Shown piece after piece: positions 3,111-48,842 of a stretch of 64,000 nucleotides of DNA. Positions within the stretch are counted from its first letter, which is position 1. Each line of letters starts with the position of its first letter. A program made the position numbers and the translations under genes. The stretch is taken from positions 1 to 64,000 of the forward strand of contig MU008169.1 of NCBI GenBank assembly GCA_010909165.1, in the 5' to 3' direction. This DNA comes from Anthoceros angustus (Eukaryota > Plantae > Anthocerotophyta). Below the pieces are notes generated by a model that made no database searches, was not told the DNA's origin, and was given only the letters and a program-made list of their open reading frames with translations.

Positions 3111-6100
3111 CTAAGGATCCCTAACGGCATCATCACGATTACTCTCCTCCACAAGGAGTCCACTACTTGAGCATCGATGATAGGACGTATAACAACTCGT
3201 CACCATCCATTCATGGTGGACCATGTCAAACTTGCATAGTTTGACTAACTCAGTTGAACATCATGCGTTCTCTAGAGGCAAGGTATAGGCGGACCGAATA
3301 TTCTTACGCAACATGTAATCTTGACCAACCACCACGCACCGACGATGTGTGACGGCTCCAAGGCGATGTCGGCTTGTGCTAAGCGTGTGCTTCACCTCAG
3401 TGCACTGCAGAAGGTAGAATTCTTGGCCCTCATCTTCTTTATTGGCAAAAACCATGAAGTTGTCACCGACTTCCAAGAGGTCGCCGTCGAGAGATCCACA
3501 CTTCATCATCGCGGACAAGGAGGCGTCGAGTAAAGGAATTGCCGGTGGGGCTGCGGGTAATCCGAGGAGCAGGACCATCAGCATGTGGTCTAATCGTAAC
3601 CAAATTCCAAAAGCCGGCGTGGAACTCTCTTGCAAGCATCATGGTTGCTTTCCATACACTCTGCACAAAAACAGGACAGGCTGCGCATTTTCAGTTGCCT
3701 GGGATCTGCCACACTAGCCCCATACAGGCTATGCATCTTCTTGGACCCGGGTATGGAGTCACAAGCATATTTCACCCTCCGATTCACCTCATCCTTGCCA
3801 ATAAGCCAGAAACTTCTATGCACTCCATGCTGCCCAGATGCATAAGAGCTTGCTGCAGCAGCAGAAATGTGTTCTTGCAGGTACTGGACAACATCAGCTG
3901 CATTTTGCAACCTCCCTGCCGTGGGAGAGGACTCTGCAGCTCTAAGGGCTCTCTTCAAAATAGCACCTGCACCATCATGCTCTCCCTTGCCATGGCCACT
4001 CCCAAAGTATGACCACATGTTGCGGCCACACAGCTAGGGTACACAGGAGATGAAGTATGAAGGTCGACATGCCTTGAATTGACTTGCTGCTCCATCGACC
4101 AGCACCAATGCTCCGAGGTCTTGGGAACCACAGATCCAACATCCACCACCAATGCTTCATCAAAGCAGTGTTGAGCGAAGGCGTGTCATGCACAAGGTCG
4201 TCAGCGATGTAGAAGTGGTAGTATTTCGAATGTTTGCGCGGGGTTGTCGGCATCTAGGGGCCATTGCGCTAGAAAACCGAGCGAGGATGGAAACACGGTC
4301 ATTACGCCAATGCATGGTGGATTTCATCTTGGACTCCAAATGCGTAATTCGAGAAAATCCATAACCGAGACAACCACATCGGATGGAAACCACTCTAGGC
4401 AATGCGAACTCCAACCCGCCATCGAACAAAGTCATGGAGAATGAAATCCTTCAACTTGCCCTTGAAGAACTCAACAAATTCTGCTGGATGTGTCTCCATG
4501 AAGACAAGTTTGATCCGTTTCTTATCCTGCCCATCCACATCCTTGCCCACAACTTGGTATTGGAAGCATCTCCATTTTAGAAGAGCATTAGGTGAACATT
4601 TATAGAAGTCTCCAATGACGAACTTAAGCTTATTCACCCCACATAGGACACAAGTGCCTTGCGGACATGCGAGCATGCCAATCTGCATCAGCCTTCGCAC
4701 AAAGAGCACTTTGACAAAGCGATCTCAGCCACACATGTGGAGGAGCATTACAAACAATGGGAGATGTACTGGCGGCAAAGCAGACCTCCACAAGAACAAT
4801 GGCAAAGACCACGGGGATGGACACGAGAGAGAGTCCCACGGAGGCCATTCAATGCATCCTTCAAAAGGCCATCTCCACATGATAACAACAAAGATTACGC
4901 TCCTGCAGCTCTTCACAAAAATGGCTTCAACTTCTCAAAGCTCCGCCCTACTTGAATGTTGGTGTTCCTCACAAAAGCGCAAGTAGAATTGATCACGGCC
5001 CACACATGCGATCCGCCACACCTCGGATGAACTTGAACACCTGAATTTGCCCACAAGGCCCCAAGCAGATGCCTAATTGAAGTTCAAAATCAACATCTAC
5101 ACTAAGCATTTACACACAGTCAAATGAGTCAGAAAGCTTACAAACCCACAGCTTTGCCAGGCCAGAGCCTCTGTTACAGCTTGGTACATGCAATCTGCTA
5201 CACCTCAAATGAACCAGGACTGCAGCACCAAATTTTTCTGTCATGTCCCCCAAGCAGATGGCCAACTAAGGTTACAATCAACATGTACACTAGGCATTCA
5301 CACACACTCTGACAAGGAGATGCCCAAACAGCATGTAAAAGGCAACCAGCAATAACATGGATTTGTGCATCACACAAAGGCACAAGACCATGACCCAAAC
5401 GTACTTGTGACATGTCAAGAAAGTGCGTGATGTGGTTGATGAAGGTTTTAGGCTGCGTCGCGGCAGCTTGGTATCTTTGTGTTTGACGCGGCAATTCCAA
5501 AAGCGGGCGATGCTTGCTTTCACATAGGCGGAAGGATGTCGACCTTGCTTTCCTTCCACCCCACACCATGTTCTCGGCACGAAACATATCCTCCGCACGG
5601 TGCTCAAAGCTTGATGGATCGCCTCCGCTCACTCCTATGTGCCGAGAAAGGCTCGAAAGGGACCCTTTCCTTGGATATCCTCGATAAGATAATGTTGAAC
5701 AAGGTGTTCCTTGCCCGCAATTTGTCACCAACTTGAACATCATTTAAACTTGTGCAAGCCTCACGCACATTCTTCAACAACAATGCTCCCAATTGGCTGT
5801 CTTTGGCATCTGTCGAGCTCTTGGTGAAACATCTTCAGAATGGCGGTTACTAAACTTCTCCGAATGTCTTGACGACATTACGCGTGTATCCACTTGTAAG
5901 CTCTAAAGCGATGACCTAATTTGCGAGCCACATCACCTTGCGGCGTAAGCATTCCTTAACACGCGTGACCATAGCTCAGCTCTCTAAACTTACATGCAGA
6001 CGGTTGAAGTTTGGGCACCACGAGTTTCTTGCACAGTAGCGATTGCATCCTCTTACATTCCACCTTCCTCTCTTCTTTGCATGGGTCCCCTCGTTTGACC

Positions 6101-14857: not shown

Positions 14858-15139
14858 TGATGAGAATCCTGGCTGCTCTAGGTAGCAAAACATAGAAGGC
14901 AGATAATAGAAAGCTTTGTACAAAAGAGTTGTATGCATTGATTATAATAGAAAGTACAAAGCCTTTATATAGGCTAGGTGGTTATAACCATAAGGTGGTT
15001 GTAACCATAAGTAGTTCTAACCTCTAGGTGGTTGTAACAACTAACTACTCATTAAACTACCTAAAGCCCTAAGAACTAAATTAATTAATAGCCTTAGGTG
15101 CCCTAGTGAAGAGTGCCCTAAATAGGTCATATTTCATCA
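14858..15139 (-). repeat. 3' LTR of copia A
   Basis: About 8 substitutions and no indels versus 48202-48483, counted by eye. Confidence 0.95.
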
Positions 15140-15556
15140 CTCCCACTCACTATGAACTAGGTGTGAAGAATCAGCTTCAAAATGAGACTAAAAGGCTAGT
15201 TAGCTCCCACTAACTTGAAAGCTATCCGCTAACTAAGAAAACAATTAAAACTGGCTTAAGTTACATTTAAGCAGAATTTAATGTAATCAAAATTAATTAC
15301 CAAAAACTTAATTAGGAAATGGTAAATTCCTAAACAAGGTAAAAGATAAAAGTAAAACTTAAACTAGGTTAATCTTAGTAAAACCATAGGTAAAAGTTAA
15401 ACAAAACTTAAAAGGTAAAAGTGAAACCCATTAAATGGGTAATGGCCCGCCATATGATGCCGTCAGTATGCCCATGGGGGTCATACGTTATGTACCCTCC
15501 CCCATACGGTTTTATTCCTCCTCCCTCGCCTCGCCTCCCCGCCGCGCTCCTCCCCC

Positions 15557-23789: not shown

Positions 23790-24214
23790 CTTATGTGTGG
23801 TGGGGTGGGGTGGGAACCCGAAGGTTCCCTTGGGAATTGTGTTGGGTGCAAGCATGCTTTGGTGCCACACTTTTGTGCCATATGGCAAAGTACATTTGGC
23901 TATCTTGTGCTAGAGTATGAATGGTGTGAATATGAATTTTGAACCATTTACTTTTATTTATTTTATCATACTTCTTACCTTATAGTATATATATTTATTA
24001 TTATTATTAGTATGCTCTACTTTAACTTTCTACTTTTTACTTTAACCATAAAACTTAACTTTAGGTAAGTCTAAATCAGCTCACTTTACCCGTTGACAAT
24101 TATGCCCACGTTTCGGACATTGATGCGTCCCACCTCTCTCCCTTCCTCCGATCCTCGCTTCTCCCTTCCTCCTCCTCCTCCTCGCCCGTGTCCGCTTGAG
24201 CTGCTGCTTCTTGC

Positions 24215-24800
24215 CATGGCTCTAGGGAGCACTCATCGTTTAAGGAAGCTCGCAATTTGAGCGGGCCAAGGCTGCAAGATCGGGCTGCCCGATCGCCGAG
24301 AGATACTCCTACCTTGAGGCAAGGTATGGAATTGGCACGTTGGTGATGGGAAGCTCCGCGAGAAAGGCTTGGACGTTCGAAACGACAAGTTTTTGATGGG
24401 TTTGAAGGAGAGATTGGGAGGGCCGGACGTGTTGTCTGATGCCTTTGGCAAGGTATGAAACGAGAACATAGGCTTTGTATGGCAAGGCACAGACACACTC
24501 TCAGCTCAGGAGTGGAGGCACGTAGATGATCTATTATACCACATCTATGGGAAACGCCCAAGCAGGTGCAACTCACAGCGGGTGCCCAGGTCCATGGCCT
24601 TGGGACTTTTGGTAGAGAAAGCGTGCAAATGTGTGGGCAGCCTTCCTTTGAAGGCGGGGCGAAGAAGGAGGCGAAGGAGGCAAAGGAGGCGAAGGGAAGA
24701 ACACTGGGATGGATGAGAAAGAGGTGGAAGTTGAAGAAATGGCGTCGGAGGAGGACAAGGAGGCGATTGCGGCTCTCTCCATAGGGGCCAGCTCAGCCTG
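24215..24800 (+). pseudogene. Accessory ORF-a of C, unknown function (further copies ~25500-26060 and ~26500-27065)
   Basis: Reconstructed frame WNWHVGDGKLREK..LKERLGG..EWRHVDDLLYHIYGKRP..ALGLLVEKKACKCVSWAAF followed by an E/K-rich tail. Confidence 0.55.
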
Positions 24801-27800
24801 TGGCGAATCACTGAGCCGGGCGATTCGCTCCTCATTGTCTCACCTCCTAAGGCTTCTAAAGCCTCTTCTATTCCGGTGATCACGAGGTGGAGCAGGAGTC
24901 GGAGTGGAGGCCGCATTTGGTGGCCGGGCGATTACCGATTCAATGAGCAGCCAAGCTGCGGCGGAAGACTTTAGAGACATCGTCGGCAAAGGTTCGTCTT
25001 CTCGTGCGTGAGGTGTTGCCACTTTACAACATGGGCGGGTATCGGGACTCGACATGGGTGGACGGTTGTCGATGTTGGGGCACACTGTGTGGTGGGGTGG
25101 GGTGGGAACAGAAGGTTCCCTTGGGAATTGTGTTGGGTGCAAGCATGCTTTGGTGCCACACTTTTGTGCCATATGGCAAAGTACATTTGGCTATCTTGTG
25201 CTAGAGTATGAATGGTGTGAATATGAATTTTGAACCATTTACTTTTATTTATTTTATCATACTTCTTACCTTATAGTATATATATTTATTATTATTATTA
25301 GTATGCTCTACTTTAACTTTCTACTTTTTACTTTAACCATAAAACTTAACTTTAGGTAAGTCTAAATCACTCACTTTACCGTTGACAATTATGCCACGTT
25401 TGGACATTGATCGTCCCTCTCTCCCTTCCTCGATCCTCGCTTCTCCCTTCCTCCCCTCCTCCTCCTCGCCCGTGTCCGCTTGAGCTGCGCTTCTTGCCAT
25501 GGCTCTAGGGAGCACTCATCGTTTAAGGCTCGCAATTTGAGCGGCGGGCCAAGGCTGCAAGATCGGGCTGCCATCGATCTTGAGCCGAGAGATACTCCTA
25601 CCTTGGGGCAAGGTATGGAATTGGCACGATGGTGATGGGAAGCTCCGCGAAAAGGCTTGGGCGTTGAAGCGACAAGTTTTGATGGGTTTGAAGGAGAGAT
25701 TGGGAGGGCGGACGTGTCGATGCCTTTGGCAAGGTCTGAAACGAGAACATAGGCTTTGTATGGCAAGGGACACACTCGGCTCGAGTGGAGGCACGTAGAT
25801 GATCTAGTATACCACATCTATGGGAAACGCCCAAGTGGTGCAACTCACGGTGGTGCCCAGTCCATGGCCTTGGGACTTTTGGTAGAGAAGAAAGCGTGCA
25901 AATGTGTGAGCTGGGCAGCCTTCCTTTGAGGCGAAGAAGGAGGCGAAGGAGGCAAAGGAGGCGAAGGGAAGAACACTGGGATGGATGAGAAAGAGGTGGA
26001 AGTTGAAGAAATGGCGTCGGAGGAGGACAAGGAGGCGATTGCGGCTCTCTCCATAGGGGCCCGGCCGGCTACCTGGCGTCCAGGCCGGGCGGCGTTCGCT
26101 CCTCCATGTCTCACCTCCTAAGGCTTCTAAAGCCTCTTCTATTCCGGTGATCACGAGGTGGAGCAGTCGGCGGAGTGGAGGCCGCATTTGGTGGCCGGGC
26201 GGGCGATTACCGATTCAATGAGCAGCCAAGCTGCGGCGGAAGACTTTAGAGACATCGTCGGCAAAGGTTCGTCTTCTCGTGCGTGAGGTGTTGCCACTTT
26301 ACAACATGGGCGGGTATCGGGACTCGACATGGGTGGACGGTTGATGTTGGGGCACTGGCGGTGGTGCTAACCTAGTTGTGGATGCAGGATCTTTGGATAT
26401 ATTGGCTGAAGGATGGGGTGCTAGTGATTTCCTCGATCCTCGCTTCTCCCTTCCTCCCCTCCTCCTCCTCGCCCGTGTCCGCTTGAGCTGCGCTTCTTGC
26501 CATGGCTCTAGGGAGCACTCATCGTTTAAGGCTCGCAATTTGAGCGGCGGGCCAAGGCTGCAAGATCGGGCTGCCATCGATCTTGAGCCGAGAGATACTC
26601 CTACCTTGGGGCAAGGTATGGAATTGGCACGATGGTGATGGGAAGCTCCGCGAAAAGGCTTGGGCGTTGAAGCGACAAGTTTTGATGGGTTTGAAGGAGA
26701 GATTGGGAGGGCGGACGTGTCGATGCCTTTGGCAAGGTCTGAAACGAGAACATAGGCTTTGTATGGCAAGGGACACACTCTCTCGAGAGTGGAGGCACGT
26801 AGATGATCTAGTATACCACATCTATGGGAAACGCCCAAGTGGTGCAACTCACGGTGGTGCCCAGTCCATGGCCTTGGGACTTTTGGTAGAGAAGAAAGCG
26901 TGCAAATGTGTGAGCTGGGCAGCCTTCCTTTGAGGCGAAGAAGGAGGCGAAGGAGGCAAAGGAGGCGAAGGGAAGAACACTGGGATGGATGAGAAAGAGG
27001 TGGAAGTTGAAGAAATGGCGTCGGAGGAGGACAAGGAGGCGATTGCGGCTCTCTCCATAGGGGCCCGGCCGGCTACCTGGCGTCCAGGCCGGGCGGCGTT
27101 CGCTCCTCCATGTCTCACCTCCTAAGGCTTCTAAAGCCTCTTCTATTCCGGTGATCACGAGGTGGAGCAGTCGGCGGAGTGGAGGCCGCATTTGGTGGCC
27201 GGGCGGGCGATTACCGATTCAATGAGCAGCCAAGCTGCGGCGGAAGACTTTAGAGACATCGTCGGCAAAGGTTCGTCTTCTCAGGGGTGCGTGAGGTGTT
27301 GCCACTTTACAACATGGGCGGGGTATCGGGACTCGACATGGGTGGACGGTTGCTGATGTTGGGGCACCTGTGGCGGTGGTGCTAACCTAGTTGTGGATGC
27401 AGGATGCTGGATATATTGGCTGAAGGATGGGGGTGCTAGTGATTTCCTGCTGATGTATGGGTGCTGGTGGTATGGGTTGCTTGTAATGTTGCTTGTAATG
27501 TGGGTGCTGGTGCACGCTTCTTTTCTTGCTCTCCGCTAGAGGCCGCTCGGTGATTTCGTGCGCTTGGGGGGGTAGTGGCTCTGATTTTGTTCCTCTTATG
27601 CCGCCCATCTTGGAGGTGCTTTCCTATTTTGAGGTGATGCCCACCTTCTTATTCTAGTGTTCTAATCGTGGTGTAAGGGCTTGGTGATCGCGCTTCTTTT
27701 TTGCTCTCTCCATAGGGCTGAGCTCGCCTGTGACGAGGTCACAGAGGGCGACTGCTTCTCGCTCCTCCCTCACCTCCTAAGGCTTCTAAAGCCTCTTCTA

Positions 27801-30800
27801 TTCCGTGATCACGAGGTGGAGCAGGAGTCGGGGAGTGGAGGCCGCATTTGGTGACGCGGAGCCACGATTCCAATGAGCAGCCAACGCGGAAGACTTTAGA
27901 GACATCGTCGGCAAAGGTTCGTCTTCTCGTCTGCGTGAGGTGTTGCCACTTTACAACATGGGCGGGTATCGGGACTCGACATGGGTGGACGCGATGTTGG
28001 GGCACCCGTGCGGTGGTGCTAACCTAGTTGTGGATGCAGGATCTTTGGATATATTGGCTGAAGGATGGGGGTGCTAGTGATTTCCTGCTGATGTATGGGT
28101 GCTGGTGGTATGGGTTGCTTGTAATGTTGCTTGTAATGTGGGTGCTGGTGCACGCTTCTTTTGGCGCACTGCTCTCCCGCTAGAGGCCAGCTTGTGTTCG
28201 CCGAACGGTGTGATTTCGTGCGCTTGGCTGGGGCCGTGGCCTGCTGATTTTGTTCCTCTTATGCCGCCCATCTTGGACAGTGCTTTCCTATTTTGAGGCT
28301 GATGCCCACCTTCTTATTCTAGTGTTCTAATCCGTCGTGGCTGTAAGGGCTTGGTGATGCGCGCTTCTTTTTGCTACCGCTCCCCTCAAGGCATGGTTTT
28401 CAATCGTGATTTTGTGCACTTATGGGGGGCCCGTTGTTTTCGTTGCTCTTGTGCCGCCCATCTTTGACAGGGCTCACCTCTTTCCAGGCTGATGTCCTGC
28501 TGTTTATTCTAGCGTTCTAGCTGTTGTTATCTGACGGTGTTGGTGGTGCCGGTGGTAATCTTCTGGCACTCGTGGATGTTGGATTTAAGCTAATTCGTCG
28601 TGATCGGTGCTAACCTAGTGGTGGATGCGAGGTTGAATAGATTTCTGCGCATCGGTCTTGGCGATTTCCTGGCGATGTATGGGTCTTGGTGATATGGGTT
28701 GGCTGCGATGTTCTTTGGTAACTTTGGATCTTTGATGCGCTGCTAGCGTTCATTTCGATCGTCGTCATCTTCCAGTTCTACGATCGTCGGATCTGTAAGG
28801 GCTTGGTGCATCGTATGCCCATGTGTGGCTACCGAATTTAAGCATAGGTGGTGGGCTCAAGGGGTGCTAGTTGTCTAACGTTGCTTGGATCGATTTCCTC
28901 TTGGCTCTTATCCCACTTCATCTCGCGTGCATAAATCGGTGGGGTGTTAGTGGTTGGTGCAAGCGGGTGCAACTCGCTCATCTTTGTATGATGGTGCTAA
29001 GGTCTCGTCGATCTTGGTTGTCTTTGGATCTTTGTTATGGTGTACTCGTGCTGTTGCCATCTGTTCTTCTAGAAGGTTCTTTGGGAGGTAGGCGGTGAAG
29101 GGTTCGGTCACTTAAGAGTTTTGGTATGTCTGGCTCTACATATGTTGTGAAACACGGATGCTATTGGTTTTGGTTTTCAATAGATGGGATCTTGCGGATG
29201 CCTCCGAAGCCGTTTTTCATCTTTCCAAGTTTCCATCCTTGGTTTTGGTTTTCAATAGATGGGATCTTTGATGCCTCCGGAAGCCGTTTTTCATCTGCTC
29301 CAAGTTTCCATCCTTGGTTTTCGCCACCGGAAGGCGTGGTAAGCGGATCCGTCGTGTGTAAGGGCTTGGTGATCGCGCTTCTTTTTGCTACTGCTCTCCG
29401 TGAAGGCCGGCATGGTTTTCAGGCTGTGATTTTGTGCACTTAGTGGGCCGGGGCCGTTGTTTTCGTTGCTCTTGTCTTGACAGGCTCACCTGTTTCCGGT
29501 GATGTCCTGCTGTTTATTCTAGCGTTCTAGCTGTTGTTATCTGCTGACGGTGTTGGTGGTGCCGGTGGTAATCTTCTGGCACTGGTGGATGTTGGATTTA
29601 AGCTAATTCGTCGTGATCTGGTGCTAACCTAGTGGTGGATGCAGGAGGTTGAATAGATTTGCTGCAGGCATCAGGTGCTGGCGATTTCCTGCTGATGTAT
29701 GGGTGCTGGTGATATGGGTTGGCTGCGATGTTCTTTGGTAACACGGATCTTGCTGCGCTAGCGTTCTTCTGATCGTCGTCATCTTCGGCGTTCTGATCGT
29801 CGGATCATAAGGGCTTGGTGCATGCGTATGTGGCTACCGAATTTAAGCATAGGTGGTGGCTGCGAAGGGGTGCTAGTTGTCTAACGTTGCTTGGATCGAT
29901 TTCCTCTGTTGGGGCTCTTATCCCACTTCATCTCGCATGATGCATATCGGTGGGGTGTGGTTGGTGCAACTGCAACTCTGCTCATGTATGATGGTGCTAA
30001 GGTCTCGTCTTGATCTTGGTTGTCTTGTGGATCTTTGTTATGGTGTACTCGTGCTGTTGCCATCTGTTCTTCTAGAAGGTTCTTTGGAGGTAGGCGTGAA
30101 GGGTTCGGTCACTTAAGAGTTTTGGTATATACTGCTGGCTCTACATATGTTGTGAAACATGCTATTGGTTTTGGTTTTCAATAGATGGGATCTTGCGGAT
30201 GCCTCGAAGCCGTTTTTCATCTTGCTCAAGTTTCCATCCTTGGTTTTCGCCACGGAAGGCGTGGTAAGCGGATCCGTCGAGTTAGTTCTCCTTGGTGACC
30301 CGGGCATTGAAGGGTGCACAGTCACGGTTGTTGTCCACGGTCTAGGTCGGTTTGGTACCCTTGTATTAGAGGACCATTAGTCATATCCGCCTTTTGTGTG
30401 TTCATATACGCACTTGTGTGTTTTGTGTTCAATGTTTCTTCATGAGTCTCACTTGTGGCGGTTGCCCCATCGTCCATGTGTGAAAATATATCCATGGCGG
30501 AGTTGTGCTACTTGCACACCTCCTAAGGCTTCTAAAGCCTCTTCTATTCCAGGTGATCACGAGGTGGAACGGGAGTCGACAGGAGTGGAGGCCGCATTTG
30601 GTGACGCCGGGGCAGAGCGACACGATTCCAATGAGCAGCCAACTGCAGCGGAAGACTTTAGAGACATCGTCGGCAAAGGTTCGTCTTCTCAGGGCTGCGT
30701 GAGGTGTTGCCACTTTACAACATGGGCGGGGTATCGGGACTCGACATGGGTGGACGGTTGCTGATGTTGGGGCACCTGTGGCGGTGGTGCTAACCTAGTT

Positions 30801-33800
30801 GTGGATGCAGGATGCTGGATATATTGGCTGAAGGATGGGGGTGCTAGTGATTTCCTGCTGATGTATGGGTGCTGGTGGTATGGGTTGCTTGTAATGTTGC
30901 TTGTAATGTGGGTGCTGGTGCACGCTTCTTTTTGCGCATTGCTCTCCCGCTAGAGGCCAGCTTGTGTTCGCCGAACTGTGTGATTTCGTGCGCTTGGGGC
31001 CGTGGCACTGATTTTGTTCCTCTTATGCCCATCTTGGGTGCTTTCCTATTTTGAGGCCGATGCCCACCTTCTTATTCTAGTGTTCTAATCCGTCGTAAGG
31101 GCTTGGTGATCGCGCTTCTTTTTGCTCTCCGTGAAGGCCGGCATGGTTTCTAATCGTGTGATTTTGTGCACTATCGGGCCGGGCCCGTTGTTTTCGTTGT
31201 TTTGCCGCCCATCTTCGGCTGTGGCTCACCTGTTTCCGGTGATGTCCTGCTGTTTATTCTAGCGTTCTAGCCGTTGTTATCACCGACGGTTGGTGGTGCC
31301 GGTGGTAATCTTCGCACGGTGGATGTTGGATTTAAGCTAATTCGTCGTGATCTGGTGCTAACCTAGTGGTGGATGCAGGAGGTTGAATAGATTTGCTGCA
31401 GGCATCGTGTCGATTTCGGCGATGTATGGTGCCGGTGATATGGGTTGGCTGCGATGTTCTTTGGTAACTTTGGATCTTTGTGCGCTGCCAGCGTCCTGCT
31501 CAGCGTCCATCTTCCAGTTTCTACCGTCGGATCTGTAAGGGCTTGGTGCATGCGTATGCCCATGTGTGGCTACCGAATTTAAGCATAGGTGGTGGTCATG
31601 AAGTTGTCTAACGTTGCTTGGATCGATTTCTCGTGCTCTTATCCCACTTCATCTCGCAGTGCATAAATCGGTGGGGTGTTAGTGGTGCAAGCGGGTGCAA
31701 CTCGCTCATCGTATGATGGTGCTAAGGTCTTGAGGCTGGTTGTACCGTGGATGTTATGGTGTACTCGTGCTTGCCATCTGCTCTTCTAGAAGGTTCCGGG
31801 AGGTAGGCGTGAAGGGTTCGGTCACTTAAGAGTTTTGGTATGTCCGCTGGCTCTACATATGTTGTGAAACACGGATGCTATTGGTTTTGGTTTTCAATAG
31901 ATGGGATCTTGCGGATGCCTCGGAAGCCGCTTTTTCATGCCGCCCAAGTTTCCATCCTTGGTTTTCGCCACCGGAAGGCGTGGTAAGCGGATCCGTGTGT
32001 TAGTTCTCCTTGGTGACCAGTGCATTGAAGGGTGCCCGTCACGCTTGTTGTCCGCTGCGCCTAGGCCGTTTGGTACCCTTGTATTAGAGGACCATTAGTC
32101 ATATCCGCCTTTTGTGTGTTCATGTACGCACTTGTGTGTTTTGTGTTCAATGTTTCTTCATGAGTCTCACTTGTGGCGGTTGCCCCATCGTCCATGTGTG
32201 AAAATATATTAGGCGGAGTTGTGCTACTTGCACACCTCCTGCTTTGCTGGTCACTAGGCCACCGACCAATTACCCATATCGGACGATCGTTTGGTTCGTT
32301 GACCCTTGGTCATGATGGATGGTGATCACTTTACCTGTGGACATTGATCCGGGTTCGAACTTGGTGAACAATTTGTACATTCTAATGGGTTCCTTATTTC
32401 CGGACCATGCTTGGCAAGCGCTTGACGTGGCCACAAAAGTGAAGGGGAGCTTGCATTGCTCCTTGCACAAGCCGAGGAAGAGGAGGCATTGTCTACAAAG
32501 GCGTTTGCGAGCAAAATAAGTTGAATGACTCGGTTGGTTTTCGACTTTGTGATTGCTCGTGTCGTGGCGGCGTCATCTCGACCGGTTTGTAATTGTGCGG
32601 AGATCACCTCTTGTGCCCAACAATGTACTTGACCACTACTTATTAACGTCTTTGGGCGATTTGAGTGCAGTAGGATGCTGTTGCTCGTGTGAAAGAGCAA
32701 GCGCAAGTGGTGGATGCAGGAGGTTGAATAGATTTGCTGCAGCATCGTGCCGGGCGATTTCGCGATGTATGGGTGCTGGTGATATGGGTTGGTCGATGTT
32801 GCGGTAACCCGATGCCGGTGCGCGCAGCTGCCCAGGTTCTCGCCGTCATCTTCCAGTTCTCTGATCGTCGGATCTGTAAGGGCTTGGTGCATCGTATGCC
32901 CATGTGTGGCTACCGAATTTAAGCATAGGTGGTGGTCAAGGGGGTGCTAGTTGTCTAACCTTGCTTGGATCTGATTTCCTCTGTTCAGGCTCTTATCCCA
33001 CTTCATCTCGCAGCGTGCATAAATCGGTGGGGTGTTAGTGGTTGGTGCAAGCTGGTGCAACTCTGCTCATGCTGTATGATGGTGCTAAGGTCTCGGTGCT
33101 GATGCTGGTTGTACTGTGGATGCTGTTATGGTGTACTCTGGTGCCTGTTGCCATCTGTTCTTCTAGAAGGTTGCTGGGAGGTAGGCAGTGAAGGGTTCGG
33201 TCACTTAAGAGTTTTGGTATGTCTGCCTGGCTCTACATATGTTGTGAAACCTGGATGCTATTGGTTTTTTTGGGTTTTCAATAGATGGGATCTTGCGGAT
33301 GCCTCCGAAGCCGTTTTTCATGCCGCTCCAAGTTTCCATCCTTGGTTTTCGCCACCGGAAGGCGTGGTAAGCGGATCCGTCGAGTTAGTTCTCCTTGGTG
33401 ACCCGGGCATTGAAGGGTGCACAGTCACGGTTGTTGTCCGCCGCACGCCTAGGCCGGTTTGGTACCCTTGTATTAGAGGACCATTAGTCATATCCGCCTT
33501 TTGTGTGTTCATGTACGCACTTGTGTGTTTTGTGTTCAATGTTTCTTCATGAGTCTCACTTGTGGCGGTTGCCCCATCGTCCATGTGTGAAAATATATCC
33601 ACGGGCGGAGTTGTGCTACTTGCACACCTCCCTGTTTTGCTGGTCACTAGGCCACTGACCAATTACCCATATCGGACGATCGTTTGGTTCGTTGACCGGT
33701 TGGTCATCGATGACCGTGGTGATCACTTTACCACCGTGTGGACATTGATCCGGGTTGGAACTTGGTGAACAATTTGTACATTCTAACGGGTTCCTTGTTT

Positions 33801-35039
33801 CCAGACCATGCTTGGCAAACGCTTGACGTGGCCACAAAAGTGAAGGGGGAGCTTGCATTGCTCCTTGCACAAGCCGCTGAGGAAGAGGAGGCATTGTCTG
33901 CAAAGGCGTTTGCAGAGCAAAATAAGTTGACGGCAGCTCGGTTGGCTGTTTCTGACTTTGTGATTGCTCGTGTCGCTGGCGGCGTCATCTCGACCCACTG
34001 GTTTGTAATTGTGCGGAGATCACCTCTTGTGCCCAACAATGTACAGTTGACCACTACTTATTAACGTCTTTGGGCGATTTGAGTAGCCGAGGATGCCGCT
34101 CGTGTGAAAGAGCAAGCGCAAGTGGTGGCACAGTGAAAGTGCCCTTCTAGCCCTCCGGAAAAAGCATGAGGTGCTAGATCAAAGGTGTAGTGTAGTCCAT
34201 GAGTACCATGGAAACCTTTGCCGATTGTATAACCTCGTTGAAGAAGCGACTGTGCCACAATGGGTTCCTGCTCCTTCGCGATGAGGCCAAATGGGCCTCT
34301 TCAAATAACCCTTTGTTACATGTGTGGCTACCGAATTTAAGCATAGGTGGTGGTCATGAAGTTGTCTAACGTTGCTTGGATCGATTTCTCGTGCTCTTAT
34401 CCCACTTCATCTCGCAGTGCATAAATCGGTGGGGTGTTAGTGGTTGGTGCAAGCGGGTGCAACTCGCTCATCGTATGATGGTGCTAAGGTCTCGGTCTTG
34501 ATCTTGGTTGTACCGTGGATGTTATGGTGTACTCGTGCTGTTGCCATCTGCTCTTCTAGAAGGTTCTTTGGGAGGTAGGCGTGAAGGGTTCGGTCACTTA
34601 AGAGTTTTGGTATGTCCGCTGGCTCTACATATGTTGTGAAACACGGATGCTATTGGTTTTGGTTTTCAATAGATGGGATCTTGCGGATGCCTCCGAAGCC
34701 GTTTTTCATGCCGCCCAAGTTTCCATCCTTGGTTTTCGCCACCGGAAGGCGTGGTAAGCGGATCCGTCGAGTTAGTTCTCCTTGGTGACCCGGGCATTGA
34801 AGGGTGCACAGTCACGGTTGTTGTCCGCTGCGCCTAGGCCGTTTGGTACCCTTGTATTAGAGGACCATTAGTCATATCTGCCCCCTTTTGTGTGTTCATG
34901 TACGCACTTGTGTGTTTTGTGTTCAATGTTTCTTCATGAGTCTCACTTGTGGCAGTTTGCCCCATCGTCCATGTGTGAAAATATATCCACAGTGGCGGAG
35001 TTGTGCTACTTGCACACCTCCCTGTTTTGCTGGTCACTA

Positions 35040-35733
35040 GGCCACTGACCAATTACCCATATCGGACAGTCGTTTGGTTCGTTGACCAGTTGGTCACTGA
35101 TGACCGTGGTGATCACTTTACCACTGTGTGGACATTGATCCGGGTTGGAACTTGGTGAACAATTTGTACATTCTAATGGGTTCCTTGTTTCCAGACCATG
35201 CTTGGCAAACGCTTGACGTGGCCACAAAAGTGAAGGGGAGCTTGCATTGCTCCTTGCACAAGCCGAGGAAGAGGAGGCATTGTCTACAAAGGCGTTTGCG
35301 AGCAAAATAAGTTGACGGCAGCCGGTTATCGCTTTCGACTTTGTGATTGCTCGTGTCGTGGCGGCGTCATCTCGACCACGGTTTGTAATTGTGCGGAGAT
35401 CACCTCTTGTGCCCAACAACACGCTGACCACTACTTATTAACGTCTTTGGGCGATTTGAGTACGGGCGAGATGCCGTTGCTCGTGTGAAAGAGCAGCGCA
35501 AGTGGTGGCACAGTGAAAGTGCCCTTCTAGCCCTCCAAAAGCATGAGGTGCTAGATCAAAGGTGTAGTGTAGTCCATGAGTACCATGGAAACCTTTGCCG
35601 ATTGTATAACTCGTTGAAGAAGCGACTGTGCCACAATGGGTTCCTGCTCCTTCGCGAGGCCAAATGGGCCTCTTCAAATAACCCTTTGTTACGTGTGTGG
35701 GAGGTTAGTGCTACTTTTCGTGTGAAACCTTGA
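35040..35733 (+). pseudogene. Coiled-coil accessory ORF-b of C (other copies ~32250-32700 and ~33650-34320)
   Basis: DIDPGWNLVNNLYIL..ELALLLAQAAEEEEALSAK..ESALLALQKHEVLDQRCSVVHEYHGNLCRLYNSLKKRL..; stop at 35733. Confidence 0.5.
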
Positions 35734-35903
35734 TGTTCTTGTTGTTGTTCTAAGATGTACCATGTAAATGTCTTTGTGTGTTCGGTGGTTTGCATGCAAC
35801 GATTTTGTTTTCCTCCCATGTGGGCATAGCTTCCATGATGCTGTCTTTTTCGAGCATTCCACTCCATGTCATCGCCTAGAGTAGGCAGGCAAGTTCCTCC
35901 ACA

Positions 35904-37560
35904 ATGGTGAAAGCCAAAGGGTGGCCTTTACGAGTGCGGTTAATTGGAACCGGCTAGACCCGGGAGCTAGAGTGGACAGAGTACCATCAAGCTGAATGAC
36001 TTCAAGCAATTGGAAGACCGCTTTGAAAGATGGTATAGGGTATGTGGGTCTGGAATTGAAGCCATCTTCCCAGTGCAGCTAGAAAACTTCTCCAAGACTC
36101 TCTGGTGAGTGCACACCGCCAAAATTGTGTTTATGCTCAAGTTCGTACCACATCACATGCCCATCAATTGTTGTGGTTTCTCCTCAGAGTTATAGTCGCC
36201 TTCCCCAATGTCTCCGATTGTTCCCACTCTTGGGGACACTCATGTTTAGAAAACCCCACCTCGGACAATGCGGCCATCACGCTGCTCGCTCCGCCACCGT
36301 GCAACCTTCTGGTGATCACGATGTAATTATGTGCTTCAAACGCCGGACCTGGTTGTGCCAAGAGCAGAGGGCCAATTGTAGTCAAGATGATGTCCGCACC
36401 AGCAATAGTGTGACCCGGTACTTTGCTTTGACCCGGTAGCGAACCGGTGGGCTGTGCGATGGAGCACCGGATCATGCAACATCTTTGTTAATTGGCACAA
36501 CGGAGGTGGGTGAGTTGCCCAAGGAGCTTCCTCCTTTAGAGGAGTGGTTAACGAGGCCATTCAGCATCGAAGGCGCGGTGTGCCCCAAGTGCAGTCGCGG
36601 TGGGAACTCCGTGGTAGAAAGTCCGAATCCTAAAGGCGTAATGGAGGGTCCTAGTGCGAAGTGCCATTGCAAAGTGAGCAGTGGCTGTGTACATGTTGTT
36701 GCGACCCTCGCGATGGATGTGCAAGCAGGCCCTCACGACCAAAATGTCACGGGAGGACAATGTGGTGCACCCAATGGCCCTCGGTGCATGGATGAGGGTT
36801 TGTCAATTGTCACTGGAATGGCAGTTGCTGGTGAACTGGCCACACATGAGGAAGTGGCCCCTAGCACGGGGGATGAAATGGCCACGGCAGTTGAGTGTGA
36901 AGTGGTCATACCGAACACCTCGGAATTGTCACTGCAGCCCAAGGCCCACCGGATCAACTCCAGGTCATCGTGCAGGCAGCCTCCAGGGAGTTGGGTGAGG
37001 CAGAGGAACAGAAGCGGCAAACTAGGCAGAAAGCAAAGGGGAAGCAGGAGCCGAGGCCGGGGCCTCTGAAACGGAAAGGTGGCAAGTCACGAGGACAGGG
37101 GCGGCCAGGAAGATTCGAGCGGCAGTGGAACGTTTGGAACGTCCAGATGATGTCGCAGATGGAGCTACGAATTTAGGTCTTGGAGACACTTTCATGGTAC
37201 TTGCTCCACATGGCAATGCAGGCGTGTCTCATTCTATTTGTTGAAAGCCTTATGCGGACTGAAGTGTTACAAGCAGATTATGTTGACCCTGCTTGGGGAT
37301 GTGAGAAGTTTGACATGGGGGACATAGTTGTGAGGGCTGTGTACTATGAAGTGATGCCTGGAGAACAGGCTGTGTACCAATTGCTAGACAGTGGTGATCG
37401 TGGTGTCCCAACAATGATGCAACGTGACATGGTGCTGGCGTGCAAAATCCCGTTGGATCCAGTGGCCCGTGTGAAGGAGCCCAAGAACTCGGTATAGCTA
37501 TATTGGCTTGCCCCCGAAATTCGGAAGTACCTGGAGCAGGTGGCCCAGGATGCTAGGTGA
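35904..37560 (+). CDS. Accessory gene of C: SWIM-type zinc finger plus a C-terminal domain paralogous to the transposase C-terminus
   Basis: Exon 1 from ATG 35904 to donor GTGAGT 36105; CHCKVSSGCVHVVATL (CxCx5CxH) at ~36662-36705; LGDTFMVL..GDIVVRAVYYE..VLACKIPL at ~37155-37500; frameshifts present. Confidence 0.6.
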
Positions 37561-37985
37561 ATTAGAACTGTTGGTGAGCCTCTTTCATTTTCTATGTCTT
37601 GTGCACTTGCTGCGGTGGACCTCCATGTCTTTCTTTGGTGGGCTGCTTTCATTCAATGCCTTGCTCATTGCGAGTTGCTATGTGTTTGGCTCCTTGGCGG
37701 GACCTATTGTGGAGAGACTTGCTACCAGACAAGCTCTCCAATATCTTGGATGGTGGCTTGTTGCATGTGCGTGGACACACTGGTTAAGTTATCAGACTTT
37801 GTGTGAGTGATCATTGACATATAAGATTGCAAAGGCATGCTGCACATGTGCATGCCAGTGTGTTTGTAAGAGATTTTATTTTGTCTTATCACACTCCTTT
37901 ATACTGGATGACATGAAGCGGGCGAGAACACCAAAATGGGTGGACTGTGACGTTCACAGTACACAAGGCGCTTATGCCAAATCGT

Positions 37986-38118
37986 CCGGGCTTGTGCGTC
38001 GTGTGTCTATGTAGACACCTCAAAGCCAAAGCGACCGGGCTTGTGCGTCGTGCGTCTATGGAGACACCCCAAACCCAAAGCATCCGGGCTTGTGCATCGT
38101 GGGTCTATGGAGACACCT
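37986..38118. repeat. 49-bp tandem repeat x3
   Basis: CCGGGCTTGTGC..GTCTATG.AGACACC at 37986, 38035 and 38084. Confidence 0.9.
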
Positions 38119-41100
38119 CTAGCGAATTGTCGAAATGGCGGAGGCCACGGTGCCATGGCGCGCCCAAGCTAGGAGTCAAACCTTGAATCCATTTCCTGCG
38201 GTGAATTGATTACTGATTGCACACATGATGCCCCTAAGAGAATGGAACATTTGGTGAGTGCACAAGTGAGGACGCACACCTCCTCCTAATCATCAAACAT
38301 CATTCGATTGTGTACATTTGTGCCAATGAAGGGCTCCATCTTCAATAGGCGTTGCCCTCGATCGATGGTGAGCCACCTTCTCCGTCGCAAGAGTCGTCCA
38401 CCTGGGTGTTCAAACACAGGCTGGCCGTTGTGAGTGCATTCGGATCTCCTTGGCATGGTATGGATGAAGTCGCTGCCCGGTTCTGGTATGGCGCCATCCA
38501 GAGCTTGTGCATCCCAAGCCGATCGCCGTGCCCGAGCACGTTCCATGCGCAGCAAGAACTTCGCAGACGCTTCAAAAAGGGGGGATTCAGCAATGGCGGC
38601 CACCAAGCTAGCGCTCGGTGGCTGCTCCCACCTCCATACCATTATGCAAACCACCCTCAAGCACCACAGCAGGGGCCTCAAGAACAAGGAATGCTAGTGC
38701 AGGCGCCTCCATGTCTGAAGCGAGAGCAGGAGGCGGGAGCCGGGTGCCGGGGAATGAAAAGGTGATAGAGGAGGTGGGTGGCTACAGGCCTTATGTTGTG
38801 CGATTACGGGGACGTGTGCAAAGGGCCACAGGAAGGGTATGACTTGGCCAAGATCATTAGATGTCGAAGACTTAGTAATGACCACATCCGGGGAAAGCGT
38901 GATCAATGAATTGTCTTTTTCTGTCCGTGTGTGGAATGCCTAGTGCTCACCGAATCCATTTGCCGAAGACATCATGTGTGCACAGTGCATTAAATTAGCA
39001 TGTGGTAGATGAGAAGTACAAAGGGACCCGGTGGAATGTAGTGCACATTCGTCCAAAACACTAAGGGTTGATACTCGAATCACGAAAGCTCTCTTCCACA
39101 ACTGTAGTCACAACAAGTTGTGCTTGAGTGAGGTGTAGATTCCACTTCTTCTCTCGGTGGTGCCATGTCAAACTTGCATGCTTGGACAAATTCAGTAAGA
39201 TGCAATCATGGAGATCCAAGGGCAAGCTGTAGACAAACCCGGCCACGTCCTTCTGCAACTGGTAGTAATGACCAACCACCACCTCCTCCCTAGATTGGTA
39301 GTTTGTATCGCTCCAGGGGCAGTGTCTGGACACTCTCACCTTGTGCTTTGCTTCCGTGCAACGGAGGAGGTAGAAGTCCTGCCCTTCGTCTTCTGGGTCT
39401 GCAAACACAAGGAAATTGTCGCCAACTTCCAATATATCAGCCAGGTGAGACACGTCAACAACATCCTCATCTTCACGATCGCCCAATGCAGTGACCCTCC
39501 ACCATTCTTGCTGCTGGTTGCATGCCTGTAATTCGAGCAACCTGTATCGCATGAGGTCCGATCGTAACACGCTTCCAATATCCGGTGAGGGACCGTGGGA
39601 CAATCGGCATGGTTGCTCTCAAGGCACTCAAGGCATGCATGCCAAGCTCCGCATCCTCAAGCTGCGTAGGGTCATCCACATTGCAACCATACAGCTATGC
39701 ATCAACTTAGAGCACGGAATGGGGTCACATGCATGCTTGTTCCTCCTGTTCACCTCATTTTTCCCTATCAGCCAAAAACTCCTATGCACGCCATGTTCTC
39801 CAGATGCATAGGAGGTTGATGCGCCACCTGAGATGTTGTTGCAAAGGTACTCCACCACATCTTGAGCATTCTGCAGCCAACCAGCTGTTGGAGAGGACTC
39901 GGCTGCACGAAGAGCTCGCTTCAGGATTGCACCAACACCGTCATGTTCTCCCTTACCGTGCCCACTACCAAAATATGACCAAAGCATGTTACACCCTCCC
40001 GTGAGGCTTGGATGCGAGCAATGAAGTAGCTTGGTCGACATGCCTTGAATTGGCTTGCCCCATCGACCAGCACGGTGTTCCAGGTAGTGGGAATCCGAAT
40101 CCTGCATCCAGCGCCATTGATGCAGCAAACAATGTTGCACAAAAGAGTGTCATGAACCATATCGTCACTAATATAAAATGGTAATACTTCTCTATGGTTG
40201 ATGAAGGGTCTTCGCATCAAGAGGGCCATTGCGAAAACACGAGAACCGGAATGGATACAGTCGCTTTTGCGGTGCATAGATTGGATTTTGTTACGCACGC
40301 CAAAGCATAGTTCGCGAAAAGTCCATCACGATACTACAACATCTTGGGAAACCATTCTAGGCCTTTGCGAACTCTATCCCTTGCCAGCGCTGAACAAAAT
40401 CATGGAGCACAAACTCCTTCAGCTTGATCTTCAGGTGCTCCACAAACTCTGATGGGTGTGTTTCCATGAAGACTAACTTGATGCGATTTTTATCATGGCC
40501 ATCTGAATCTTTGCCAACAACTTGGTACTGAAAACATCGCCACTTGAGAACAGAGTCAGGTTGGATAGTTGCATCTACCTCCGATGGACAAAAGGCAAGT
40601 GTACTAACACCACACGAACAAGTTCCTTGCAAGCATGCAAGAGCATGCCAATCAAGATCTGGTTCCTTTGCACAAAGGACACGCTCACAAAGCACCCTCA
40701 CGGCGGCAAGCGGGAAGCATTACATGCAAGATCCGATGACCCTAAAGGAGGATTACAAACAAGGCAAGAGCATTCCACGGTGGCCACGGGTGAACCACGA
40801 AACCGTTCCCCTAAGGCCATTGAAAGCATCCTTTAGGAATGCCATCTCAACATGGTACCTACAACAGCATAGATTGCGCTCTTGTAGGCTCTTTACATAG
40901 AAGGGCTTCAATTTCTCGAATGTACGCTGGCCTACTTGAATATCAGGGTGTTCATGACAGAAGCGAAGGTAGAATTCCGTCTGCACATGGTAGCATCGTA
41001 TGAATCAGTGCGGCTGAATGTATACACAACCCTATGTGTCCGAGCCAACAAGCTTAAGGTACCAAAAGGCAAGACAAGTGGACACATGCCCAAGTTACCA

Positions 41101-41264
41101 GATGACCCAAAAACGGTGGCAAAGGCCCGTGGCAAAGAACGTGACCAAGTGTACATGACCAGGAAGCCACATGCTCATCCAAAAAAGAGGTTGCTCAATA
41201 CAATCATCCTTGGGCATGGACAAAGGGACGGTGAGGGTGACAACTCGGCCACACATGTGCAACC

Positions 41265-41480
41265 GAGTGAAGCGACCATGTGACCACCAAGTCAAGCAAC
41301 CATGTGACCAGAGTGAAGCAACCTTGTGACCACAGGGTCAAGCAACCATGTGCCCACTGGGTCAAGCAACCATGTGACCATAAGGAATGGGAACTTGTGG
41401 TCACCCAGGGTTGCCCCGTGGCCGTCGCCGCTGGCCACAATTGTGGCCAATGAGTCCACCAACCACGTGACCACAAGCAC
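41265..41480. repeat. Intronic motif array AAGCAACCATGTGACCA (second copy 42698-42860)
   Basis: Several closely spaced copies of CAACCATGTGACCA and GTGACCAC. Confidence 0.85.
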
Positions 41481-44058
41481 TACTTGTGGTCACCATGGGG
41501 TGACACAATGTGGCAAGAGGCCCACAGACCAATCTTGTGGTCTCAGGCGCAGGTGGCCATCCGAGCAGCTGGTGAGCACATGGGAAGACCACAATAAGTC
41601 AATGGCACCAAACATCCACAATGGCACAATGTATACGGTACATCGAGCTGCATAAATAGCAACCACCATGTACATCACCCTTATGTGAGACAACATCAAC
41701 GGCGTTTGCACCAAGCATGCATTCGTCTTCCTTGAATGCCTCACACGGACATGAAAGCAAACATCGAACAACGAATTCTCATAAAAACACGAGCGGAGGA
41801 AAACAATAATCCAGCTGCACGACTGGAGACATCACTCAAACATCACCAATAGCGGACTCACCAATCACCACATCACAAACAACATGTCCACCACAACTAC
41901 GCAGATAAAACCGAAGAATGAAAGATCAACTGAGACATATCAAGGAAGTGAGTGATATGCTTGGTAAACGTCTTTGGAGCCGTTCTCAACCGTTTTGTGT
42001 CCTTTGTGTTTGATGAGGGAAGCAAGCTCGAGCGCACAATCGTCCTTGACATACCCAAACAATGTCATTCCGTGTCTTCCTACCGCACCACACCATGACC
42101 ACAATTCACCACGTTCATGCCCTTGCCGAGAGTTTAGTGCGATATAGCGCCTCCTCGACTCCTATCTGCCGAGACGAGAGGACACCGGATGGCTTCCATG
42201 GATGTCCTCCCGAATGATGTTGAATAGTGTGTTCACGGCCTCGGGTGGTCTCCAAATTGCACATCCTTTAGACGTGTACATGCATCCTTCACATTCTTCA
42301 ATATCAAGGCGCAAGGTGGCTATCCTTTGTAGTCATGCAATATCTGACGGTACTCCTTTAGCAATGGCAAGTGGCCAAAAGTGCCAAGATGTCCTTCCGC
42401 ATGATGATGTGTACGCAGAGGTGAGGGACAAAAAATGTTGCCCAAGTTGGCGAGCTACTCGTTGTTTTACGGAGAGAGCACTCGACTCCCCACAGGCGCC
42501 ATAGCCCGCTCGGCTCTCCACTTTGGACGCTTTACATGACCGTTTTGCCAGCCACCACCCTCATGTCTCCTCCCTCGCGAGCATCTAGCCCTTGTTGTTC
42601 ATCTTCCTCCTCGATAACCCGCACCCGGATGTTTGCGGATGCATTGTTTGGGCTGCTTTTCCCTCGACGCCTTCCCATGCTCGGGCTTGGTGAAGCAACC
42701 TTGTGACCACGGTGGTGCAACCATGTGGAGTCAAGCAACCATGTGACCATAAGGAATGGGAACTTGTGGTCACCAGTTGCCCGTGGCCGTCGCCACAATT
42801 GTGGCCAATGAGTCCACCAACCATGTGACCACAAGCACTACTTGTCACCATGGGTGACACAATGTGGCAAGAGGCCCTGAGACCAATCTTGTGGTCTCAG
42901 CGCAGTGGCCATGGTGAGCACATGGGAAGACCACAATAAGTCAATGGCACCAGACATCCACAATGGCACGGCAATGCGGTGTCAGCTGCATAAATAGCAA
43001 CCACCATGTACATCACCCTTACGTGAGAGCCATCAAGCGTTTGCACCAAGCATGCATTCGTCTTCCTTGAATGCCTCACACGGACATGAAAGCAAACATC
43101 GAACAACGAATTCTCATAAAAACAACAGGAGAGAAAACAATAACGATCCAGCGTACGAACCTGGAGACATCACTCAAACATCACCAATAGCCAGACCTGT
43201 CACCAATCACCACATCACAAACAACATGTCCACCACAACTACGCAGATAAAACCGGAAGAATGAAAGATCAACCTGAGACATATCAAGGAAGTGAGTGAT
43301 ATGCTTGGTAAACGTCTTTGGAGCTGTTCTCAACCGTTTTGTGTCCTTTGTGTTTGATGAGGGGCGCGAAGCAAGCTCCCAGAACTGCACAATGCTGTCC
43401 TTGACATACCCTGAAACAATGTCATTCCGTGTCTTCCTACCTGCACCACACCATGACCACAATTCACCACGTTCATGCCCTTGCCGAGAGTTTAGTGCGC
43501 GATATAGCTGCCTCCTACTGACTCCTATCTGCCGAGACAGAGAGGACACCAGATGGCTTCCATGGATGTCCTCCCGAATGATGTTGAATAGTGTGTTCAC
43601 GGCCTCGGGTGGTCTCCAAATTGCACATCCTTTAGACGTGTACATGCATCCTTCACATTCTTCAATATCAAGGCGCAAGGTGGCTATCCTTTGTAGTCAT
43701 GCAATATCTGACGGTACTCCTTTAGCAATGGCAAGTGGCCAAAAGTGCCAAGATGTCCTTCCGCATGATGATGTGTACGCAGGTGAGGGACAAAAAATGT
43801 TGCCCAAGTTGGCGAGCTACTCGTTGTTTTACGGAGAGAGCACTCGACTCCCCACAGGCGCCATAGCCCGCTCAGCTCTCCACTTTGGACGCTTTACATG
43901 ACCGTTTTGCCAGCCACCACCCTCATGTCTCCTCCCTCGCGAGCATCTAGCCCTTGTTGTTCATCTTCCTCCTCGATAACCCGCACCCGGATGTTTGCGG
44001 ATGCATTGTTTGGGCTGCTTTTCCCTCGACGCCTTCCCATGCTCGGGCTTGGTGAAGC
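41314..44058. repeat. ~1.37 kb tandem duplication in the C transposase
   Basis: Junction microhomology GTGAAGCA at ~41313, ~42690 and ~44051. Confidence 0.9.
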
Positions 44059-44982
44059 AGGCCATGCCACAATACCATCATCGGCATGCTCGCTCGCCCT
44101 CATGACTCGCACTTTACCAAAAGGCTTGAGTTAAGAGCGACACAAGCACCCATTAACAAGGCCCCACACGATACACGAATGGCACGATGGCATTACCTCC
44201 ACCGCCAAGATCCGCTTCTTGCAGTTACCACCGACACATCACCGCAAGCTTGAAAAGCGTTACGACGCATCGGCGAAGCGTAACGCGCCAATATCCTAGC
44301 AAACCTAGCATACCGCATCAACCACCGGATCGGTCTGACTCATCATCCACAGTGCACTAGCATCAACATCCATCCGGCCGAAACTGGCGATCTCCTCCAC
44401 TCCGGTGGCGGATCCGGTGAATCTTGGTTTGGTTGCAACATAGTGTGGCTGCGGAGAGCAACCACGCCAGTTCTTGGTGTCATCACCCACAAGTTCCTAC
44501 TCCTTCTCCACATCGGACAAATGACAAGTGCACAAGTCCGCTCATGTCACCGACCTTTCTTTGGGCGTGAGTCCCCAACCACCGATTTCCTCGGCCTTGG
44601 CGGTTTTGAGGTTGACTTGTTAATGCGAGTTGAGCGGTGGTACGCAACCCGATCCACTAGGTAAATAATCCAATTCAAATTCCGCCATAAACCGGCCAGC
44701 CATGGCGTTCATCACAATTGTGGCTAAATGAACTTTGTGTCTGGACAAACCCGTCGAGTGAACTCAACATTTTGTTTATGTGAAATAGATATTTTAATAA
44801 TCTATATATTTTTATATATTAACGCCAAATACAAAAACTCCTGTGCTATAAGCTGTAAAAAAATTAGATACATCCGGGACGATATGAATTACATATATTT
44901 ATATGAACATAGAGAGGACAAATTAAGAGTGTTTCGTCCGTTCCTCACTTAAGTGAGCACCAAAGCATGCTTGCACCCTGTT

Positions 44983-48201: not shown

Positions 48202-48483
48202 TGATGAGAATCATGGCTGCTCTAGGTAGCAAAACATAGAAGGCAGATAGTAAAAAGCTTTGCACAAAAGAGTTGTATGCATTGATTATAATAGAAAGTA
48301 CAAAGCCTTTATATAGGCTAGGTGGTTATAACCATAAGGTGGTTGTAACCATAAGTAGTTCTAACCTCTAGGTGGTTGTAACAACTAACTACTCAATAGA
48401 CTACCTAAAGCCCTAAGAACTAAATTAATTAATAGTCTTAAGTGCCCTAGTGAAGAGTGCCCTAAATAGGTCATATTTCATCA
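48202..48483 (-). repeat. 5' LTR of copia A
   Basis: Adjacent to the PBS; flanked by TSD CAATG. Confidence 0.95.
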
Positions 48484-48842
48484 CAATGAAGAGTCTCCTA
48501 GCAATTTGGGCAGGCATCAATTATTCTTGTATTAAAACAAATAGTCTAGAAGAGTATGTATAGAGGACTTGATAGTTTGTGTGAGTGATATCATATATAT
48601 GATAGATGTTAAGAAGCTTGGTATGTTAAGATGTTGAGGAGCGGCTGCAGAGGCGGGGAGGATGAGACTCTTTGCATTCTCAAATTAAGTTAAATATATG
48701 TAAATGATAAAAATTATACATGACTTAGAACTCATTCTAACATCTTCATTTGTTAGTGAATTTGTCAAGTATATTGTATTGCACTTAATTTTAAAAGCCC
48801 CACATGATCTTACAATAGTGGAGATAAGCACTAAGAGGCCCT

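Follow-up and report, generated by a model that had tools for sequence, protein, structure and literature searches.

On the plus strand of the hornwort window analysed here (the whole stretch of 64,000 nucleotides from Anthoceros angustus contig MU008169.1), positions 37,110-37,560 contain coding sequence related over its full length to the C-terminal domain (~125 residues) of the neighbouring transposase family. Its homology to this transposase tail, the lesions that disrupt it, the BAH-like class of the predicted fold and the lack of recent descent from either transposase copy of the window, named C and S1, are established. We explain the stretch as a pseudogenised second gene, once ending in a BAH-like module, beside transposase copy C, and give this reading a probability of about 0.45. 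A preliminary description had instead proposed an accessory gene pairing a SWIM finger with a copy of the transposase's own C-terminal, possibly BAH-like, domain.

Transposase copies and the convergent tail

The window is rich in repeats, with Copia elements, long tandem arrays, and nested and duplicated repeats. It contains C and S1, two diverged and dead copies of one DNA-transposase gene, both on the minus strand and sharing 50-73% protein identity. The tail under study, here called the accessory tail, lies on the opposite strand and can be read only in three pieces:

39061..43678, minus strand: transposase copy C, a dead gene with a GSGHGKGEHDG core, two stops within the Cys finger and a duplicated N-terminal exon
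39083..39477, minus strand: C-terminal tail of C, BAH-like by predicted fold and frameshifted near 39205; scores 92 bits against the tail profile
~3.1-5.7 kb, minus strand: S1, the diverged, dead transposase
3114..3509, minus strand: tail of S1, interrupted in frame by a stop at 3261-3263; scores 64 bits against the tail profile
37110..37223, plus strand: first piece of the accessory tail, the acidic linker and first strand (..DDVADGATNLGLGDTFMVLAPHGNAG), at family profile positions ~225-248 and within the 61-bit match
37226..37252, plus strand: second piece, in a second frame and located by the profile, where VSFYLLKAL corresponds to the family's gveFYiLqC
37255..37560, plus strand: third piece, in a third frame, PAWG..FDMGDIVVRAVYYE..VLACKIPL, continuing past a TAG into the terminal helix (LYWLAPEIRKYLEQ)

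The tails of S1 and C are broken at the same point (the stop at 3261-3263 and the frameshift at ~39205, respectively), where other family members are intact; the lesion may be old and shared, or the agreement may be due to chance. Around C, a 1.37-kb tandem duplication repeats its N-terminal exon, and long-period tandem arrays (units of 1.0-1.7 kb, at 23794-35700 and 41313-44059), the ORFs of which have no Pfam match, abut the accessory stretch. Three copies of a 49-nt tandem repeat (37976-38122) separate the two convergent tails, and the entire C region lies between two 283-nt repeats (14858-15140 and 48202-48484) that are 33 kb apart and 97% identical. Further duplicated segments are found at 12.5-14.9 kb and 55.3-57.8 kb. 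Neither SET remnants in the window nor shared 3' flanks or terminal inverted repeats of the two convergent tails were found.

Pairwise, the accessory tail is only weakly similar to its neighbours. BLASTP between single ORFs of the accessory and transposase tails is not significant (E 2.6), and Smith-Waterman alignment gives a score of 52 and z 5.3 with C, equalled by 1 of 5000 shuffles, and z 2.1 with S1, with X at the breaks. For this reason, members of the family were gathered to build a profile. With a profile of the C and S1 tails, HMMER returned 37 short matches among 1.84 billion representatives, and a word search with the family protein P0016 added 39 members; a word-index search with the C tail ORF and a metagenome locus scan with the tail piece gave no matches. 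In these comparisons, joined readings with X at each break were scored locally, and the large searches and the structure prediction took single ORFs or database proteins. The family includes proteins from the fern Adiantum and the liverwort Calypogeia, in which the end of the core (HGKGxxDG) is followed by a CxCxxC..C..H finger, an acidic linker and the tail of ~125 residues. As for the enzyme itself, no piece of C or S1 matches Pfam, DUF7869 included, nor does the Pfam DUF7869 model match this transposase clade; in a language-model atlas the core piece adjoins DUF7869 clusters at 0.96, and the motifs DFAENY, SDGCAAQFK and HGKGEHDG are recognisable by eye in one related locus (L006). As a candidate assignment made from sequence, the transposases of this plant family may be of the DDD type and related to DUF7869.

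Against a profile HMM of 59 family tails, all from other genomes and none from the window, the accessory tail scores 61.2 bits (E 9e-18) over model positions 9-125 of 131. The resemblance to the transposase C-terminal domain that had been noticed at first by manual alignment, marginal in pairwise terms, is thus decisively upheld by the profile. The peptides quoted at that time are present in the sequence but are spread over several frames rather than one, and the reading requires three frames, not two: two frames give 40 bits, the third-frame piece VSFYLLKAL raises the score to 61.2 bits, and the ORF of the third piece alone gives 29.8 bits. The match is colinear over the three frames at the expected profile positions and retains the family-conserved residues GDxF, FY, WG, GD, YY and aCKxP. 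At 37495-37497 a premature TAG interrupts it, and the family alignment continues beyond this stop into the terminal helix. The score and the colinear alignment through the TAG make the homology to the family's C-terminal domain certain at the level of sequence, in a copy with two frameshifts, at 37224-37225 and about 37253, and a premature stop; it is a pseudogene and cannot make the protein. A chance resemblance or a translation artefact, with no real domain behind it, would agree with the non-significant BLASTP between single ORFs, but 61 bits, against at most 5.6 bits among those shuffles that gave any score with the same HMM, and colinearity over three frames leave this explanation a negligible probability.

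The accessory tail is 24% identical to the tail of C, 22% to that of S1 and at best 32% to that of any family member, against 50% between the C and S1 tails themselves. Maximum-likelihood analysis joins C and S1 with 100% bootstrap and places the accessory tail among other lineages, at the end of a long branch (1.76 substitutions per site) and with weak support values (59-77). In its C-terminal motif, KIPLDPVAR, the accessory tail is similar to an extra tail copy at locus L013 (KIPMTPVAR), which belongs to the P0019 clade, the clade nearest C and S1 in the tail tree; this likeness and the weak branch support make the placement of the accessory tail uncertain. A recent duplication from C is excluded by the sequence comparison, and the idea that the tail is a copy of the transposase's own C-terminus fails on both its low identity to C and S1 and its separate branching.

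Predicted fold of the family tail

Transposases of this family in liverworts, ferns and hornworts end, by predicted fold, in a BAH-like domain. The AlphaFold2 model of a complete family tail (P0011, from 62 aligned sequences) has a pLDDT of 94.2 and a pTM of 0.86, and the modelled C-terminal half of P0016 shows the same domain after the finger. In an unbiased structural scan of the P0011 model against 48,161 representative chains, BAH domains took 15 of the 17 top places, with matches to DNMT1 BAH1, DIM2, EBS, MTA1, ORC1, AIPP3, TNRC18, ZMET2, PBRM1, MET1, ASI1, Rsc2 and ASH1L; DNMT1 BAH1 superposes with Z 6.8 and an rmsd of 2.6 A over 81 residues. When the best 1000 chains of Foldseek were realigned, the top 25 of 25 were BAH domains, the highest Z being 7.1; barrels of the chromo, Tudor and PWWP types ranked below them. 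Overall the BAH matches are middling (Z 5.4-7.1, rmsd 2.6-3.9 A, 81-96 of 129 residues). Conserved aromatic residues (FY, W, YY) are present in the family tails.

At the level of sequence, no Pfam family, BAH PF01426 included, is matched by any tail, and the family tail profile has no match at E 10 among the sequences of solved structures. In view of the middling Z and the absence of a sequence-level link, the tail is named BAH-like in fold only: a predicted beta-barrel of this fold class, with no membership of the BAH family implied. The early suggestion of a BAH-like domain, based on a consensus pattern, consequently holds for the fold and not for sequence or profile similarity. Likewise, the check by AlphaFold and Foldseek proposed with it yielded a confident model with BAH domains at the top of the structural ranking, but Foldseek alone gave nothing below E 0.1.

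The upstream frame and the second genes of relatives

Upstream of the accessory tail, on the same strand, lie the sequences that would have formed the rest of a second gene:

36485..37069, plus strand: ORF of 194 codons whose Cys/His cluster (36581-36694) reads CPKC, 25 residues, then CHCKVSSGCVH
35771..35869, plus strand: string that may be a decayed RING-H2 remnant (..CNDFVFLPCGHSFH..); it shares the frame of the 194-codon ORF

It is here that the preliminary description placed its SWIM finger. The string CHCKVSSGCVH (36662-36694), followed by VVATL, is literally present and fits the pattern CxCxnCxH with n=5 only; the spacer of SWIM fingers is generally longer than this. The pattern is found a second time in the six-frame translation of the window, at 37602, and therefore discriminates poorly. 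Furthermore, neither the 194-codon ORF at E 1 nor the excised 59-residue finger at E 10 matches SWIM PF04434 or any other Pfam family, and the claim of a SWIM finger is not supported. An accessory gene joining a true SWIM zinc finger to a duplicate of the element's own transposase tail would account for the CxCx5CxH string and for the tail homology, which is real; nevertheless, with the Pfam result, the short spacer, the recurrence of the pattern, and a tail that is 22-24% identical to those of C and S1 and branches elsewhere, we regard such a gene as very improbable.

No relatives of the 194-codon ORF were found by word-index search, in the language-model atlas or by metagenome locus scan, and against the transposase-finger profile it scores like its own shuffles. 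The identification of its finger with the RING-H2 of relatives was also tried and rejected, the scores against the RING profile being again like those of its shuffles. The ORF frame is depleted of stops, with 7 in 456 codons over 35,702-37,069 against 16-23 in four other frames; between 35904 and 36439 this frame has three stops. An open run of at least 194 codons arises in 12 of 500 shuffles, GC is flat across the codon positions of the ORF, and its joining to the tail demands a further frame change, which would lie at 37027-37069, or an intron. The RING-H2-like string at 35771..35869 is the best match of the window to the RING accessory profile of relatives, at 2.2 bits, a score equalled by 7 of 100 block-shuffled windows and so not significant; as a decayed remnant it would be a lead only. 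In any plus frame of 35.6-37.3 kb, no transposase core or finger was detected upstream of the accessory tail, either by profile or by tblastn with P0069 and P0064; the same core/finger profile finds C and S1 at E 1e-60.

In relatives of the element, a second gene converges on the transposase gene, 0.5-1.5 kb past the stop of the latter. Two kinds of ORF were found in convergent orientation, a Pre-SET/SET ORF nearest the transposase end and a set of homologous coiled-coil/RING-H2-like ORFs:

L001:11784-12890, minus strand: Pre-SET/SET ORF
L003:11897-13036, minus strand: Pre-SET/SET ORF
L010:3204-3935, minus strand: Pre-SET/SET ORF
L011:4278-5009, minus strand: Pre-SET/SET ORF
L001:18745-19335, minus strand: coiled-coil/RING-H2-like ORF
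L006:6838-7446, minus strand: coiled-coil/RING-H2-like ORF
L010:7061-7354, minus strand: coiled-coil/RING-H2-like ORF
L012:15890-17443, minus strand: coiled-coil/RING-H2-like ORF
L013:7888-8181, plus strand: orphan partial tail (GCA_046195345.1), almost identical to the tail of the neighbouring P0019 transposase and 1 kb upstream of the P0019 gene

Among three diverged relatives (L001, L003 and L010/L011), identities of 62, 37 and 47% for the SET module go with 66, 49 and 48% for the transposase tail; the divergence of SET tracks that of the tail, so that, judging from these identities, the Pre-SET/SET gene looks like cargo of the element. The RING and SET second genes have no detectable similarity to the accessory stretch. 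In addition, at L008:5862-7855, on the plus strand, the relative's transposase is immediately preceded, on the same strand, by a CACTA-type transposase (Transposase_21, DUF4218). Each of the loci L001, L002, L003, L006, L008-L011 and L012 has a single tail, and a second tail in the accessory position was found in 0 of 8 related loci.

Position, orientation and the stop-poor frame argue for a former gene at this site. Alternatively, the accessory tail may be an orphan fragment: the ~140 terminal codons of a further, diverged transposase copy of the same superfamily, which stayed behind or were captured next to C in tail-to-tail orientation, with the upstream ORF and its finger unrelated to it and no accessory gene ever having existed. 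To this explanation we give appreciably less than an even chance. The boundaries of the accessory tail, from acidic linker to terminal helix, are exactly those of the transposase C-terminus, and the tree puts it among transposase tails of other lineages, away from C and S1. Moreover, the orphan partial tail of L013 stands beside a transposase of the C clade and indicates that fragments of tails do become dispersed; nested and duplicated repeats crowd the window, and the two-tail design occurs in no relative. The orphan-fragment explanation has difficulty, however, with the core and the finger, the best-conserved parts of the family, which are undetectable upstream; it leaves without a role the depletion of stops in the upstream frame of the same strand, and it would have a fragment fall, in location and orientation, at the very site of the relatives' second gene. 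The pseudogenised second gene is in turn weakened by an ORF with no homologue in the searches made and a flat GC, by the frame change or intron required for the join, by the lack of two-tail relatives and by the non-significance of the RING-like string.

If the stretch is a pseudogenised second gene, it would be the decayed 3' part of a convergent coding unit adjoining the dead copy C, in which the one module that can be verified is a paralogue, complete yet broken, of the family's terminal transposase domain. In its intact ancestors, a Cys/His-rich N-terminal part not derived from the transposase would have been joined to the BAH-like module. By analogy with the chromodomains of chromoviral integrases, the transposase tail may tether integration to chromatin; a protein with the BAH-like module alone could then compete or co-target with the transposase, docking, as competitor or tether, on whichever nucleosome or histone feature the transposase tail would recognise. 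A further step, which we consider unlikely, is that in intact members of the hornwort lineage a gene opposite the transposase specifies a stand-alone protein with a BAH-like module taken over from a transposase tail. By binding the same chromatin mark as the transposase, this protein would steer or restrain integration, the second gene of sister lineages ending instead in a SET histone-methyltransferase module.

Known systems and significance

The predicted tail fold has its best structural matches, and almost its only ones, in the BAH domains of DNMT1, ZMET2/CMT3, EBS/SHL, AIPP3, ORC1 and PBRM1; unlike them, with which it has no sequence or profile similarity, the family tail is a transposase C-terminus known from a predicted model. 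Chromoviral (Ty3/gypsy) integrases likewise carry a reader-type module, the chromodomain, at the C-terminus of an integrating enzyme, suggesting a tethered choice of target (10.1101/2021.11.30.470311; PMC12477816), but the enzyme here would be a cut-and-paste DNA transposase and the fold is predicted to be BAH-like. Two-gene DNA transposons include Harbinger, with its transposase and a Myb-like protein. Second genes on the opposite strand of transposable elements are documented (10.1101/2021.11.30.470311; PMC12477816), and Sola1 with its ParB-methyltransferase gene is another two-gene DNA transposon (PMC12477816). The listed fusions of reader domains with transposable elements involve Chromo, PHD, Tudor and SET and include no BAH (Grau-Bove et al., 10.1101/2021.11.30.470311; PMC12477816).

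The relatives of this family, with their convergent RING and SET genes, resemble such two-gene elements, none of which has been described with a second gene like the candidate here, made out of a paralogue of the domain that ends the transposase itself. The KP repressor of the P element arises by internal deletion and keeps the DNA-binding N-terminus of the transposase. If the accessory protein was real, it would likewise have retained no more of the transposase than a binding module and might have competed with it; differently from KP, this would be the C-terminal module, joined to unrelated sequence.

The most useful result of this analysis is the BAH-like C-terminal domain that is predicted across this transposase family and for which we found no prior description; our literature search returned no paper on a BAH-type domain in a DNA transposase, nor any on DUF7869. 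The extra tail copy is at best the fossil of a derived regulator. Retrotransposons use chromodomains to pick their chromatin targets, and cut-and-paste transposases of land plants with a BAH-like end, accompanied by SET and RING second genes, would extend chromatin targeting to DNA transposons. The BAH-like transposase tail would give a testable handle on how these elements choose or reshape chromatin.
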